64,000 nt of DNA, taken from the sequence record OQ992561.1; one strand, given 5' to 3'. The notes below the pieces were generated by a model. The model was not told the origin of the DNA, made no database searches, and saw only the letters and a list, made by a program, of their open reading frames with translations. The position numbers were made by a program, and so were the translations under genes. Of the stretch, positions 3,892 to 51,414 are shown piece after piece; the first letter of the stretch is position 1; every line of letters starts with the position of its first letter.

Positions 3892-4791
3892 ATGAATAAT
3901 CTACAAGTTAATACCACTATTAAAGAATTACATAAACTTCTAATCTGTAATATTATTGATGGTAAACTAATTGAATATAATGACATTGTGAAAGAACTGA
4001 AAATTACTAATGATGAATTAGATAATCTACTAATAGCTATTTCAAAGCTATCTGATACACCAATTAATAATATCTTTAAATCACTTTCACTAGCAATTGA
4101 TCTACGTACAATTACATCCGTCATTGAAAAACTTAGTAATTCTACGAAACTATCTAAAAAAGAAATCCAGCTAGATCTGTTAACTAGGTTAGGAATAAAA
4201 GATAATTATTTTTCGAATAGTTTTACTAATGTGTATCATGAACTAAGTGATATTATCAAAAAGCTTGAATATAGTGATAAACTATATCAATCAGATTATC
4301 AAAACTTTATTATTGATAAAGTAACTAGTCATTTTAAAGATGTATTATATTCAGCTGGTTATGCAATCAATGATATTTATAAGTACACTGATTCTAAAGT
4401 AGTTAATGTAGATAAAAATGGACTATTGGTAGGTATGAGTATTACCAATTATAGCTTCCATAATAAGGATGAACCAATTAGGACTATTGGTTTTTCATTA
4501 ATTGATAAAACCGAGCGTTGTGTTGGAAAATCTGAAACTATTAAAAAGTTTGATGTTGAAGATTTTCTTAATACAATGGATACTATCAATATTAATCATA
4601 ATGATATTATGTTTTTCTCAAAGCAGTATCGAGAAAAAGACTTAGCCATTCATAATGCGATCATGAATGAATTTAAGGTGAACAAGATTTCAAATGATAC
4701 ACGTGATAATATAATATCTTATCATATTGCCATGATGGGACATAACTGTATTATCTCATTTAATCACAGTGGGCTCCTATTAAAAATTTAA
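3892..4791 (+). CDS. hypothetical protein (very AT-rich)
   Basis: 299-aa ORF, AAGG RBS. Confidence 0.75.
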
Positions 4792-4848
4792 TAGAATATT
4801 AATTAAAAATCATCTTATGTAGTCAATCTAATTAAGGAAACAAAAAGA

Positions 4849-5205
4849 ATGCCAACTTATATTGAATTAATCAATATTGTCAATGACGATACTCCTGAAG
4901 ATGATGCAGTTATTAGTGATCTGATGAGCCAAATGAATGATAAACAAACTGTTCTTGACAGTTGTCGTATCAATCATAAAGGATATGCTTATTTCAAGTT
5001 CCATGTTAAGGGATCAATTAGTAAGGATAAACTTAAGGCTCTAAATGAAACTTTAAAAGATTCTAATCTTGTTGTGACTGATGCTAGTGCACAACGTGGC
5101 TTCATGCCACCTAATAAGTTTGATGATATCACTTATACTGAAGAGAGTGTTGGTTATAGGGCAATGGTCTGGACAAGCTTCACTATTGAAAAGCTACTTG
5201 TATAA
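4849..5205 (+). CDS. probable small virion protein (gp244-like by position)
   Basis: TATGTAG late-type motif at 4816 upstream and own terminator; identity inferred from gene order only. Confidence 0.45.
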   Translation: MPTYIELINIVNDDTPEDDAVISDLMSQMNDKQTVLDSCRINHKGYAYFKFHVKGSISKDKLKALNETLKDSNLVVTDASAQRGFMPPNKFDDITYTEESVGYRAMVWTSFTIEKLLV

Positions 5206-16792: not shown

Positions 16793-16945
16793 ATGGAAGG
16801 AATGAAATATGTAGCATTGTTTTTAGTTATAGCGGTTTTAGGTAGTACGCTAATTGGTATTAATAAAATTATCAATATAGGTGATATCGATGGATACCGA
16901 TCAGAAAAAGAAAGAATCACCGAAATTCAATCCTATCATAAATAG
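16793..16945 (+). CDS. 50-aa membrane peptide, not in ORF track
   Basis: GAGGT RBS; MEGMKYVALFLVIAVLGSTLIG... Confidence 0.6.
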   Translation: MEGMKYVALFLVIAVLGSTLIGINKIINIGDIDGYRSEKERITEIQSYHK

Positions 16946-32930: not shown

Positions 32931-32961
32931 TTTATATTTTCCTGATTAATGACAAACATAA

Positions 32962-32981
32962 GCCCCTCCATATGGAGGGGC
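32962..32981. terminator. hairpin terminator downstream of tRNA-Thr
   Basis: GCCCCTCCA-TA-TGGAGGGGC. Confidence 0.65.
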
Positions 32982-33059
32982 AGTATGATTTACTGAGTCT
33001 TTCGCGTTCAATCCCATCCTAACTAATATATTTAAGAATAGTTTAAACCTCAGTAAATT

Positions 33060-33136
33060 TGGTGCCGCCACTCCGAATCGAACGGAGGACCTACGCATTA
33101 CAAGTGCGTTGCTCTACCTAGCTGAGCTATAGCGGC
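33060..33136 (-). tRNA. trnT: tRNA-Thr(TGT)
   Basis: Cloverleaf GCCGCTA..., anticodon loop CTTGTAA, TTCGA T-loop, encoded CCA. Confidence 0.95.
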
Positions 33137-39349: not shown

Positions 39350-39606
39350 ATAGAAGTTCCTTTATTACAATGTGGTATATAACCTTTATTAAATTAGGTT
39401 ATATACCGGCTATGGAAAGGCCTCGTCACCTTCCCTTCACCTATATTAAATATCAATAGTGGTTATAAAGAACGAGATACACTCATTGACATAATATAGC
39501 CAGGGGTGGCAAACCCCTGGCACTCAGACACACTCTATAATTAAATCTACCACCGAGTGTATTTAGTGGATAGCTTTAGGATTATCTAGATACAGTAATC
39601 CTACAT
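39350..39606 (-). ncRNA. candidate structured ncRNA or long 5' leader
   Basis: TAC-N14-TATGTAG promoter at 39604-39624, no ORF, at least four hairpins. Confidence 0.45.
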
Positions 39607-42489: not shown

Positions 42490-42942
42490 TCAACGTGGCC
42501 ATTGTAAAGAAGTTATCTTATTACCATTAATGTAGACATCGGTCACTTCGCACCAATCATTAATTCTGTGTTCAATAATTGGAACATCATTTCGGCCAGC
42601 CACTCCAATCATATTCCATTTAACATAAATATTCATTAGATCAATTGTTAATTTCTCTTTTATGAGTTTAGGAGAAATTAATTTAATATTATTAATGTTA
42701 AAGAAGTAATTATTAACTTCTTCTAAATATTCATTAGTATTAGTAGTACTAACTTTGCCTTCATGTTCAAGTGAGGATGGTTTATTCTGATTTACAATAT
42801 TGCTCACTAGACTTCTTAAAACGGCACTTGCCCTACCAGCTTCACGTCTTTTATATTTATCATAGTCTTTTACATTAGCTGCAATTTTATCAAATTCTTT
42901 TTGGGCATAGATTAACCCTGGTAAAAGTTCATTCTTAATCAT
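42490..42942 (-). CDS. hypothetical protein
   Basis: 150-aa ORF. Confidence 0.7.
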   Translation of the reverse strand: MIKNELLPGLIYAQKEFDKIAANVKDYDKYKRREAGRASAVLRSLVSNIVNQNKPSSLEHEGKVSTTNTNEYLEEVNNYFFNINNIKLISPKLIKEKLTIDLMNIYVKWNMIGVAGRNDVPIIEHRINDWCEVTDVYINGNKITSLQWPR

Positions 42943-42997
42943 TTTATAATTACTCTATGTTATTTGTACATATTTTAACATACTCACGTAAAAACAA

Positions 42998-43142
42998 AAT
43001 ATAAAGCCTCCCCGAAGGGAGGCGATATATCGTCATTAATGCCCAGCAAAGAGTTTTACTCTCTGGGAGCCAGTTGGAAGGGGGACTGGCTCCGATTTAT
43101 TATGACTAATGTAGAAACGAGGGGGAGGGATCATTTCTACAT
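42998..43142 (-). ncRNA. candidate ~145-nt sRNA with C-rich loops
   Basis: Own TAC-N14-TATGTAG promoter, three hairpins, UUCG terminator at 43006-43023 with U-tract on minus strand, no ORF. Confidence 0.55.
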
Positions 43143-43162
43143 ATCATTACATACTCAGTAAG

Positions 43163-45046
43163 TTATTCTTCAATACCAATGACCGTATTGCGTTCATTGG
43201 TGTTCTCTACGGTTGAACCACTTGGGAAGCTACTGACAGATGCTTGCATTAGTTTCAACATGTCGATAGCAAATACTCGATATGTAGATTCAACCTTAGC
43301 GTCGTCGTACGATGCATGAATGTTAAGAATGGCATTATCGACCCTTTTAGCCAGCAGATATACATCCTCAAGAGCATCTTTATCTTTAATAGTGGATAGC
43401 TTATGTTTGTAGATATCCCCATTGACAGATAGGTCAGGATACTGGGCTACCCAAGTGTCCGCAATAGTCTTAGTGTTGTTAGACAGAACGTCAATGATAA
43501 CGTTAGCTGCTTCCACAATACCGGTAGCATCAAGCAACTTAATCTTAGCACCAGCATTATCTGGCCATTTGGGTTCTTGGAAGTTTGTCTTTACATTGGG
43601 TTTCCATTCAGCCAGAAGAGTAGCGACTTTCTTAGGGTCTTGCCAATCATTCCCTTTGAACAGATTAACCACGGGGGCTAGTATCTTACTGTTCTCATCC
43701 AGAACTTTCTGGTTGTGACGATCAGCTTTAGCTACAGCATTAGTGATATTGGCTTTTGCGGTCTTAGGATCATTAGACGCGAACGTCTCGTAACTCGATA
43801 CTTTTACTTCGCCGGTTTTAAGCTTTGCTTCTGCCACCCATTTGGCATCACCATAGGTACTTTTCAGTGTAGCAATAGCTTTCTTCTTTTTATCAAGATT
43901 GATCTCAGGGCCAGAGTCGAAGATACTCTTAATGGTGTCGATAAGACCTTCATTTGAGACTTGTATAAAGTCGGGAGTATTAATGATGGACTTCTCTACA
44001 TACCCGCCACGAATAACTCGATTTATAAAACCATTAAGACCACTACCGGTTTCGGCCATATCTTTCATGATTTCTATATTCGTTTCACCAGCACTTTGGG
44101 CATTGTATAAATAATAAGAGCCATCTTTAAATTTTAATATAATCCAGTCATCCCCAGTTAGATATGAATCAATATTACTATCATTCATACTTTGATATTT
44201 AATGAATTCTGGATTAGTACTTAATACTTCTTCAATGAATTCTTCTAATGCCGCAGAATTATTAATAGCATCAACCGGTGGAATTTCACCATCAATGGGT
44301 TCAGTAGTTGGACCAGTAACAATGGCAGGTAACGGATCCTCCTCTACAATAACAGTTTCTTCCACTGGTAGAGCACCGCAAGATAAATCAATTAGTTTAT
44401 TAAAACTACTAATGATCTCACCAAGTGCTACAAGAACTGCTGGCTGTTCAACTTGTTCAACTTTAGCAATACCAGTTTCTGTAAATTCTTCAGTAATTCG
44501 GTTATAGACTTCCACTAATTGATTAGTAAGCTCTGCTACTTTTGGCAGAGTCTGCTTAGACAGAGGTTCAACTACAGTTGTATCTGCTTCAACAAAAATA
44601 GAGTCATCTTCTTCTAAACGGCTAGTATTAGCTGAGCCAGCTGTGAAGTTATAAGGCATATCTTGAATTACTTCATTAATTTCAGATGCCTCCATATCTT
44701 CATTTAGACGACCACTATAAGTACGCATCATACCTTCTGCTTCTTTAATAGTGGAATGCGCCAAGCGTCCCCAATCACCACGCATAATACCGCGCTCGGT
44801 AAGACCGCGTGCAGCTGAACCAAGATCAATAGGTTCTTCAATAAATGATTGTTCTTCAACCCACTCCTCATTACTGTAACATTCTTTTAGAATGGTTTTA
44901 AATTTAGTACTAAAGGGTTGTAGAATCTTTTTATCTACTTGTTCAACATTTGTTTTAAAGTGTTCTAGACTTGGTGTAGCTTTTGAAGATACTTTTTCAG
45001 TACCGCTATATAGCGTACGGTTTAGGAAGTTTAGCATTTTATTCAT
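43163..45046 (-). CDS. inner-head/ejection protein paralog (gp303-like) with KTSC-like middle domain
   Basis: Two L..xY.N/D..WV domains, S-x-E head-protease sites (PSLE, VSNE-GL), acidic linker. Confidence 0.65.
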   Translation of the reverse strand: MNKMLNFLNRTLYSGTEKVSSKATPSLEHFKTNVEQVDKKILQPFSTKFKTILKECYSNEEWVEEQSFIEEPIDLGSAARGLTERGIMRGDWGRLAHSTIKEAEGMMRTYSGRLNEDMEASEINEVIQDMPYNFTAGSANTSRLEEDDSIFVEADTTVVEPLSKQTLPKVAELTNQLVEVYNRITEEFTETGIAKVEQVEQPAVLVALGEIISSFNKLIDLSCGALPVEETVIVEEDPLPAIVTGPTTEPIDGEIPPVDAINNSAALEEFIEEVLSTNPEFIKYQSMNDSNIDSYLTGDDWIILKFKDGSYYLYNAQSAGETNIEIMKDMAETGSGLNGFINRVIRGGYVEKSIINTPDFIQVSNEGLIDTIKSIFDSGPEINLDKKKKAIATLKSTYGDAKWVAEAKLKTGEVKVSSYETFASNDPKTAKANITNAVAKADRHNQKVLDENSKILAPVVNLFKGNDWQDPKKVATLLAEWKPNVKTNFQEPKWPDNAGAKIKLLDATGIVEAANVIIDVLSNNTKTIADTWVAQYPDLSVNGDIYKHKLSTIKDKDALEDVYLLAKRVDNAILNIHASYDDAKVESTYRVFAIDMLKLMQASVSSFPSGSTVENTNERNTVIGIEE

Positions 45047-51383: not shown

Positions 51384-51403
51384 GCCTTCCCCCAGGGGAA
51401 GGC
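51384..51403 (+). terminator. hairpin terminator
   Basis: GCCTTCCC-CCAG-GGGAAGGC-TTT. Confidence 0.75.
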
Positions 51404-51414
51404 TTTATGTCATA

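Follow-up and report, generated by a model that had tools for sequence, protein, structure and literature searches.

Does the spacer between the phage genes homologous to PHIKZ303 and PHIKZ302 hold an RNA gene of its own, and if so, what could that RNA act on? The question is raised by a 64,000-nt stretch of sequence record OQ992561.1 (the window), for which a preliminary description had proposed a stand-alone minus-strand small RNA (sRNA) of about 140 nt with its own promoter and terminator. The window is Phikzvirus DNA: the 1-kb region around the RNA is 100% identical to Pseudomonas phage ANB1 (ANB1 coordinates minus 186000 give window coordinates), and many other Phikzvirus genomes are 95-99% identical over the same region. 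We find that the spacer carries the ANB1 copy of a known phiKZ-type small-RNA gene and that the locus is a re-discovery of a published RNA, to which we add homologues in three genera, compensatory changes, C/U-rich loops that are always unpaired, and a 32-aa open reading frame (ORF) that is not conserved.

The ANB1 copy of phiKZ TU237

Using ONT-cappable-seq of phiKZ, Putzeys et al. (2024, microLife; PMC10914365) mapped a 141-nt transcript, TU237, which has its own start site, ends at terminator T131 and lies upstream of PHIKZ302. A Northern blot confirmed its length and abundance, and its function was left open (PMC10914365). The window RNA shares with TU237 its intergenic position, strand, promoter type, terminator (the counterpart of T131) and predicted length, and the two are identical at 137 of 141 nt (97.2%); a covariance model of the family, described below, scores 114 bits on the window copy and 113 bits on that of phiKZ. 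The two differ in loop 1 (CCCUCCCCC in the window, CCUUCCCCC in phiKZ) and in one compensated stem pair (G-C to A-U), and the region upstream of the promoter, with the 3' end of gp303, is unrelated in phiKZ (52% identity). The phiKZ 303/302 spacer contains no unit other than this one. Earlier phiKZ studies (dRNA-seq at 10 min and Grad-seq) did not report a 141-nt RNA, and our literature search found no later paper giving TU237 a function.

In the window, as in phiKZ, the RNA occupies the gp303/gp302 spacer on the gp302 strand (Table 1). It is very probable that the phage RNA polymerase starts at G 43140 and stops about 141 nt on at a terminator of the phage's own family, producing a non-coding RNA that folds into a 5'-terminal hairpin, a three-way junction (the closing helix with two hairpins) and a terminator hairpin, that should be stabilised by the hairpins at its two ends, and that forms a self-contained module after a gp303-like gene in three genera.

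Table 1. Coordinates of the RNA, its parts and neighbouring features (window numbering unless another genome is named)
Feature	Position	Strand	Basis or remark
Predicted small RNA, 141 nt, orthologue of phiKZ TU237	43000..43140	-	length, homology, covariance model
Promoter-like sequence TACTGAGTATGTAATGATATGTAG	43160-43137	-	sequence
Upstream promoter element ATAACTTACT, TTAC at 43161-43158 (-21..-18)	43157..43166	-	resembles middle-promoter motif AAanTTACc
Promoter core TATGTAATGATATG	43140..43153	-	second TATG (43143-43140) is the nvRNAP start motif; +1 is G 43140
Hairpin 1, 5'-terminal	43109..43142	-	9 bp as first described, extendable to 12; 10 bp inside the transcript
Hairpin 1 loop UCCCUCCCCC	43130-43121	-	P(unpaired) = 1.00
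Closing helix P2, 5' strand GUCAU	43102..43106	-	minimum-free-energy folds
Hairpin 2, stem GGAGCCAGU/ACUGGCUCC	43066..43093	-	fold and alignment
Hairpin 2 loop CCCCCUUCCA	43084-43075	-	core CCCUUCCA invariant in all three genera
Hairpin 3, AGAGAGU-AAA-ACUCUUU	43047..43065	-	fold and alignment
Closing helix P2, 3' strand AUGAC	43032..43036	-	minimum-free-energy folds
Intrinsic terminator of the phage's own family	42995..43031	-	core GCCUCCC-UUCG-GGGAGGC at 43023-43006, flanking AU pairs, then UUUAUAUUUUG
Second promoter of the same type, TACGTGAGTATGTTAAAATATG, +1 at G 42969	42969..42990	-	directly 3' of the terminator; serves gp302
32-aa ORF annotated in ANB1, judged spurious	43036..43134	-	start codon not kept
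PHIKZ303 homologue (gp303, virion protein)	43163..45046	-	ORF and synteny
PHIKZ302 homologue (gp302)	42490..42942, ATG at 42942	-	ORF and synteny
Published non-coding RNA 3'UTR_PHIKZ298, downstream of gp298	~39487-39600	-	present in the window, TAC…TATGTAG promoter
Extra stretch of the sister genera	4975-5003 (PhiPA3 stretch studied); 2655-2675 (PS119XW)	RNA strand	alignment

A conserved fold without a conserved reading frame

The three hairpins and the UUCG terminator with its U-tract that had been described on the minus strand are all present, and helix P2 encloses hairpins 2 and 3, creating a three-way junction. The 141-nt RNA has a minimum free energy of -53.5 kcal/mol; the minus-strand fold of the locus reaches -57.3 kcal/mol (z = -7.1), a value that none of 200 shuffles equals. 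Independent predictions for Pawinskivirus and PA7_Y12 give this topology as well, and so does that for PhiPA3, with an alternative closing helix that the energy model favours by 2.8 kcal/mol.

By blastn and synteny we found homologues in two more groups of nucleus-forming P. aeruginosa phages, the Pawinskivirus group (PS119XW, PA1C, phiLBG22, phiHQ, BRkr, HPP-Temi and HHBS36_1) and the Miltoncavirus PhiPA3, and the RNA is present in all Phikzvirus, Pawinskivirus-group and PhiPA3 records found. In each genus it starts just 3' of the stop codon of a gp303-like gene, behind a TTAC-N5-TATGTAATG(A/T)TATGTAG promoter, and has a terminator of the phage family at its 3' end. A covariance model built from Phikzvirus and Pawinskivirus sequences, with PhiPA3 left out, recovers the PhiPA3 copy at 59.6 bits (E ~4e-12) and, within the window, picks out no paralogue or second copy. 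In 201phi2-1, Phabio and Viktualia the gp303-like gene is not followed by a homologue, the PhiPA3 RNA used as a blastn query added no further genus, and pattern scans of IMG/VR matched only a PA7 contig. The hairpin-2 pattern also picked up 106 metagenome loci; these are chance matches to the hairpin only (covariance model ≤21.5 bits), and we rejected them.

The covariation check that the preliminary description had called for was run on nine distinct sequences in a model-based alignment, which by construction leans towards structure. Standard pairs fill 97.2% of its cells, and double-sided changes occur in 10 of 28 pairs, compared with 3.8±1.2 after shuffling of columns and 0-2 after displacement of the partners by 1-3 columns. 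A plain MAFFT alignment without PhiPA3 points the same way with fewer events (4 pairs; 10 cells vs 3.7±1.6); with PhiPA3, MAFFT misaligned hairpin 1 and the 3' strand of the closing helix, and the closing helix was read by hand. Compensatory changes affect 7 of 12 pairs of hairpin 1 across genera. Hairpin 2 is paired in 100% of cells, through changes from U-A to U·G to C-G and from G-C to C-G, and one pair of hairpin 3 exchanges A-U, G-C and U-A. The closing helix reads GUCAU/AUGAC in Phikzvirus, GACCACAGC/GUUGUGGUC in Pawinskivirus and CUCGGC/GUCGAG in PhiPA3, and PA1C has GAUCACAGC/GUUGUGAUC, a C-G to U-A swap. Every helix is thus backed by compensatory changes and, as judged from aligned sequences, the structure is under selection.

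The RNA body is also a conserved island. It is 93.6-100% identical among Phikzvirus strains, while over 42560-43560 its flanks diverge: identity is only 52% at the 3' end of gp303 (phiKZ, fnug) and 73.5% at the 5' end of gp302 (T2P), with 75-93% for the spacer that holds the gp302 promoter; we therefore regard the RNA as a conserved module between mosaic breakpoints. One could still imagine an inert promoter-terminator pair, an insulator or a remnant, that yields a stable RNA without function. Its region is dispensable in PAO1 (PMC12676376), and its position is taken, in 201phi2-1 and Viktualia, by a short, unrelated promoter-terminator unit. Compensatory changes in every helix, retention in all records of the three groups and conservation across mosaic breakpoints nevertheless make such an RNA very improbable.

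That the locus has no ORF, as had been stated, is literally wrong: the 32-aa frame 43134..43036 exists and is annotated in ANB1. It has no Shine-Dalgarno (SD) sequence, its ATG is ATA in phiKZ, 124.01, T2P and fnug, and it is absent in the other genera, from which it follows that the small RNA is non-coding. On the opposite strand the loops would read GGGGGAGGGA and UGGAAGGGGG, GGA motifs of the kind expected in an RsmA-type sponge. The plus-strand fold is weaker (z = -4.25), however, and some 21 G·U cells of the alignment would become A·C mismatches there; being valid on the minus strand only, these cells identify it as the functional strand, as had been favoured from promoter and terminator polarity. 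With the promoter, the terminator and the published reads (PMC10914365) all on the minus strand, and the start codon lost in phiKZ and many relatives, we give next to no credence to a 32-aa peptide or a plus-strand sponge as the product of the locus.

Promoter, terminator and independence from the downstream gene

The proposed minus-strand promoter TAC…TATGTAG, likened to that before tRNA-Asp, is indeed present, and TACTGAGTATGTAATGATATGTAG differs from the tRNA-Asp promoter at 4 of 24 positions. In late-type promoters of phiKZ, transcription starts at the last G of TATG (PMC4666361). By this published rule the start lies at 43140 rather than 43142, the two ends of the range first proposed, and from G 43140 to the U-tract (~43000) the sequence measures 141 nt. 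The upstream element ATAACTTACT overlaps the gp303 stop codon (43165-43163); phiKZ has AAAACTACC in the same place, and the TTAC is conserved in Pawinskivirus and PhiPA3. The element resembles the middle-promoter motif of phiKZ, AAanTTACc, which two published middle promoters join with TATG (PMC4666361), and the label 'middle/late' given to the RNA is reasonable.

Exactly three copies of the core TATGTWANNNTATGTA are present in the window (40926, 42982 and 43153); all lie on the minus strand, ahead of tRNA-Asp, gp302 and the small RNA. Its enrichment is modest: with one mismatch allowed, shuffled sequences give 0.98 matches on average and 9 of 100 reach three. Most Phikzvirus strains, Pawinskivirus and PhiPA3 share TATGTAATG(A/T)TATGTAG exactly or nearly so; in phiKZ and fnug its place is taken by AATGTATCTAATATTATGTAG.

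The terminator fits the motif of the phiKZ family, with CCTCCCTTCGGGGAGGCTTTAT at 43022-43001(-), and its core is identical to those at 2892(+) and 16354(+). Counted with a flexible pattern (a rigid 30-mer consensus failed on the terminator of the RNA within 3 mismatches), the family CCYCCC…GGGRGG-TTTAT has about 13 distinct sites in the window and none in shuffles. That phiKZ terminators share a sequence motif is known (Putzeys et al., PMC10914365); the shared motif exceeds what the hairpin requires.

Is the RNA a gene, or the leader of one? The authors of PMC10914365 class TU237 as a candidate non-coding RNA derived from a 5' untranslated region (5'UTR) by conditional premature termination, and both their Northern blot and their long reads include a full-length read-through transcript in phiKZ. 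On this view a longer transcript is terminated early and its 5' portion is the RNA; the terminator would set read-through into gp302 and the tRNAs, and the short RNA would be a by-product or a secondary regulator. A tRNA cluster does lie downstream in all three genera. Moreover, in Pawinskivirus (PS119XW, 2706-2747 of the stretch studied) and PhiPA3 (5036-5088) TATAG or CATG replaces TATG after the terminator, so that no canonical TATG promoter stands between the RNA terminator and the next gene. Genes and tRNAs beyond it may need read-through, and the tRNA-Leu of Pawinskivirus, with only a degenerate promoter in between, may depend on the RNA promoter. The published classification and the degenerate promoters speak against treating the RNA as a gene in its own right.

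Several features, however, are hard to reconcile with a leader. What follows the terminator differs from genus to genus: gp302 behind a second full promoter in Phikzvirus, tRNA-Leu at a distance of 36 nt in Pawinskivirus (where a gp302 homologue is absent from this place), and in PhiPA3 a small unrelated ORF, gp374, with the gp302 homologue some 1.8 kb beyond. The TACGTGAGTATGTTAAAATATG promoter of gp302 is conserved in Phikzvirus relatives. Inspection of folds and alignments revealed no conserved antiterminator pairing, loop 1 and the 3' arm of the terminator being pairable only in ANB1-type strains, and a covarying three-way junction with an invariant loop 2 would be superfluous for simple attenuation. 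Synteny in three genera and the second promoter lead us to conclude, contrary to the 5'UTR label, that the RNA is an independent gene whose presence does not depend on the gene downstream; that it serves chiefly as a cis-acting leader or attenuator is unlikely. On phiKZ transcription data, covariation and conserved exposed loops, the proposal of a stand-alone RNA of about 140 nt is thus well supported.

Exposed loops and their possible partners

What the RNA does with this fold is less certain. The hairpin-1 loop contains CYUCC in every genus (CCCUCCCCC, CCUUCCCCC, UCACUCCU or CCUACUCCU), the hairpin-2 loop core CCCUUCCA is invariant across the three genera, and in all of them the C/U-rich loops have a predicted P(unpaired) of 1.00. 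Runs of five Cs number 13 on the minus strand of the 64 kb (about one per 4.9 kb), and two of these are the two loops. Conservation of the loops among relatives, on which the preliminary description had staked its case, therefore holds for the exposed C/U-rich motifs and for CCCUUCCA; it does not hold for the exact CCCUCCCC of loop 1, which is strain-specific, reads CCUUCCCC in phiKZ and is missing from the other genera.

By analogy with the anti-SD loops of alpha-r14/NfeR1-type sRNAs, we suggest that the RNA is a trans-acting, anti-SD-like sRNA that works through its exposed loops on targets outside the window, the likeliest of the readings considered yet far from assured. The folded body would be a scaffold permanently displaying two single-stranded pyrimidine loops, CYUCC and CCCUUCCA. 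These could pair in trans with purine-rich, SD-like GGARG stretches of mRNAs, and such pairing would alter the translation or stability of the mRNAs bound. The targets might more probably be G-rich P. aeruginosa leaders, or else a few phage genes outside the window.

The phage's own ribosome-binding sites (RBSs) in the window offer little to these loops. We examined 88 annotated starts in window positions 1-47000, a quarter of the genome, over the regions -30..+20. Their SD sequences are short and A-rich (AAGGA, GAGG, AGGT). The best duplex energy of loop 1 with these regions is -6.19 kcal/mol vs -6.73±0.45 for shuffled loops, and that of loop 2 -5.06 vs -5.23±0.43, so that neither real loop pairs better; loop duplexes with RBS regions were only marginally better than those with intragenic controls, and the top match was a terminator arm. 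The suggestion that the loops occlude RBSs is accordingly unsupported for the 88 phage genes tested. Because these sites are short, A-rich and not preferentially complementary, host leaders or phage genes beyond the window are the likelier targets.

The loop duplexes just described are one of several points that weigh against pairing in trans. No target emerged among the 88 translation-initiation regions; complementarity to a generic SD spans only 4-5 nt, too short for specificity; the sequence of loop 1 varies between CCCUCCCCC, CCUUCCCCC, UCACUCCU and CCUACUCCU; the region can be dispensed with in PAO1 (PMC12676376); and the stem of hairpin 2 is conserved along with its loop, which suits recognition by a protein at least equally well.

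In the window, the 7-nt complement of CCUUCCA in loop 2 occurs across the start codon of a 50-aa membrane-protein-like gene, which starts AUGGAAGG (16793-16800, +). This duplex with loop 2 reaches -11.8 kcal/mol, and one such match is within chance. The loop 2 complement GGAAGGG is found nowhere else in the window.

Separately, we observe that the loops of the RNA look like unpaired copies of terminator 5' arms. In ANB1, loop 1 equals such an arm (CCCUCCC), and in phiKZ the loop-1 9-mer CCUUCCCCC equals the 9-mer in the arm GCCUUCCCCC of the terminator at 51384-51413 (+). If hairpin 2, the C-rich loops or both were bound by a protein, the RNA could be a decoy, sponge or scaffold, and a reader of the conserved CCYCCCC arm of phiKZ terminators would be one possible partner. 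The stem of hairpin 2 (6 of 9 pairs unvarying) and its loop core have stayed the same across genera while neighbouring proteins are only 35-66% identical, the terminator motif goes beyond the needs of the hairpin, and the 88 RBSs yielded no RNA target, all of which would fit. On the other hand, no candidate protein is known and loop 1 is not conserved in sequence between genera, and we give protein binding a small though real chance.

An earlier proposal has the loops act in trans on the phage's own terminators, invading their G-rich 3' arms and so affecting termination genome-wide. It is true of ANB1 that loop 1 is the exact complement of the SD-like terminator arm GGGGAGGG, which occurs in several terminators: of its seven occurrences in the window, one is the antisense of the RNA itself and the others belong to terminator hairpins as arms. 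Neither phiKZ (CCUUCCCC) nor the other genera keep the exact complement, however, and since the GGGGAGGG sites are arms already paired in cis, invasion is thermodynamically unattractive. Each G-rich arm is transcribed right after its perfectly complementary C-rich arm, so that the intramolecular hairpin should win. With its arms occupied and CCCUCCCC not conserved, trans invasion is only a very faint prospect.

An extra unpaired stretch in the sister genera

In Pawinskivirus and PhiPA3 the RNA has an extra unpaired stretch between the junction and the terminator, in which UCUCCUUGUUGUGUUGAUG is exactly shared; the Phikzvirus RNA, including that of the window, lacks it and keeps only the GGCAU(U)AA that follows. 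The sister genera thereby gain unpaired CUCCUU stretches, and the reverse complement of the shared sequence ends in AAGGAGA. Ten exact 19-mer matches were found in 185,579 genomes, about as many as expected by chance and none in Pseudomonas. Eight of the ten precede the start codons of unrelated genes by 3-6 nt, and we read the stretch on this basis as a generic anti-RBS sequence.

PhiPA3 provides a further lead. Its conserved unpaired AUUCUCCUUGUUGUGUUGAUGGUUGGCA can be aligned, in 24 of 33 columns, to the 5' segment of the ErsA consensus that is likewise unpaired; ErsA is an envelope-stress sRNA of the host P. aeruginosa, and it contacts its targets through its unstructured region (PMC5819304). 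The local alignment scores 18 (highest score in 2000 shuffles, 13), and the match to the Rfam model Pseudomon-1 is sub-threshold (17 bits vs a gathering score of 50, E 0.13). Pawinskivirus retains a 14-nt core only and has no Rfam match, and a search of IMG/VR found no ErsA locus proper. The window RNA does not match ErsA/Pseudomon-1 (RF01719) at E ≤ 10, and its local alignment is at the null level. We treat the resemblance as a lead rather than a result, and one that does not extend to the window RNA. Combined with the loops, it would fit a host-directed anti-RBS family that spares the A-rich sites of the phage, in which the sister genera copy the ErsA seed and take over the ErsA regulon and the Phikzvirus version is trimmed to its loops; we think this whole picture improbable.

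Comparison with known RNA families

No Rfam family reaches its gathering score in the RNA region, permissive scans giving sub-threshold matches only; across the 64-kb window, the matches at gathering score are six tRNAs. The best resemblance is to alpha-r14 (RF02344), at 19.9 bits vs a gathering score of 58.8. In alpha-r14, unpaired CCUCCUCCC anti-SD motifs pair with the ribosome-binding sites of mRNAs (PMC10746234). The window RNA shares with this alpha-proteobacterial sRNA (alpha-r14/NfeR1) a set of several hairpins with unpaired C/U-rich anti-SD motifs, and its two C-rich-loop hairpins align in cmscan to the two hairpins of alpha-r14. Unlike alpha-r14, it is phage-borne rather than alpha-proteobacterial, it contains no CCUCCUCCC (its loops are UCCCUCCCCC and CCCCCUUCCA), and it has a three-way junction that the alpha-r14 consensus lacks. 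The resemblance is one of design, by analogy, and not of membership.

CcsR-type sRNAs are similar in kind to alpha-r14. RsaE/RoxS and other C-rich sRNAs of Firmicutes likewise carry exposed motifs for which pairing with G-rich SD regions has been proposed or shown. They have no sequence or structural homology with the window RNA, and the sole Rfam match to RsaE is at noise level and in a sister genus. The T4 rnaC and rnaD (species 1 and 2 RNAs) are stable RNAs of obscure function in the tRNA cluster of T4, cut from a tRNA precursor. As a precedent for a small RNA next to tRNA genes of a phage (the Pawinskivirus copy precedes tRNA-Leu by 36 nt) they hold by position and no further, the RNA described here having its own promoter and terminator rather than being processed from a tRNA precursor.

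Closer in origin is the PHIKZ298 3'UTR RNA, a non-coding RNA found by Grad-seq (PMC8545117). It belongs to the same phage group and is likewise short, structured and terminator-ended behind a TAC…TATGTAG promoter; it differs in having no sequence similarity and no C-rich loop. An sRNA upstream of gp182 that is conserved among giant phages (PMC11512511) can be likened to the window RNA by description, as a short, structured, terminator-ended RNA of the same phage group.

An accessory, host-interaction region

The RNA gene heads the phage tRNA region, and tRNAs for Leu, Pro, Met, Asp and Asn lie further along the minus strand. In the ANB1 annotation of this region, a CDS at 32946-33098 (-) overlaps tRNA-Thr (33063-33136) and looks like a spurious gene call. 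Pfam and PHROGs searches of the neighbouring proteins gave no functional clue.

A transposon study of phiKZ (preprint, PMC12676376) found the orf184-orf304 region dispensable in PAO1. In the same study an orf302::Tn mutant fails on P. aeruginosa strain Env201, from which its authors infer a defence inhibitor, with polar effects on the tRNA genes just downstream not excluded (PMC12676376). From the dispensability and this host-strain phenotype, we place the RNA in an accessory, host-interaction region. A possible interplay of the orf302::Tn phenotype with the small RNA upstream, or with polarity on the downstream tRNA-Leu/Pro, is not addressed in PMC12676376.

At the corresponding site, after the gp303-like gene, 201phi2-1 (4795-4885 of the stretch studied) and Viktualia (3950-4040) have an unrelated unit of about 75 nt, made of a TATATG start motif and a AAACCCAC…GTGGGTTTTAT terminator. 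Even with a different sequence, this site appears to carry a short transcription unit.

Significance

Small RNAs of lytic phages with a known function are, to our knowledge, very few, and we know of none in nucleus-forming giant phages. As it stands, our analysis is mainly a re-discovery of a published RNA, one that is abundant and verified in phiKZ and that lies in a dispensable accessory region, beside tRNAs and the candidate defence-inhibitor gene orf302. Its standing as an independent gene in three genera, with a covarying scaffold and exposed loops, turns a catalogue entry into a testable case, in which trans base pairing, attenuation and a protein decoy are now defined as competing models and the loops and helices are the informative positions. 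Should the RNA turn out to act on host translation or on the regulon of a host sRNA, it would represent a new layer of host takeover.

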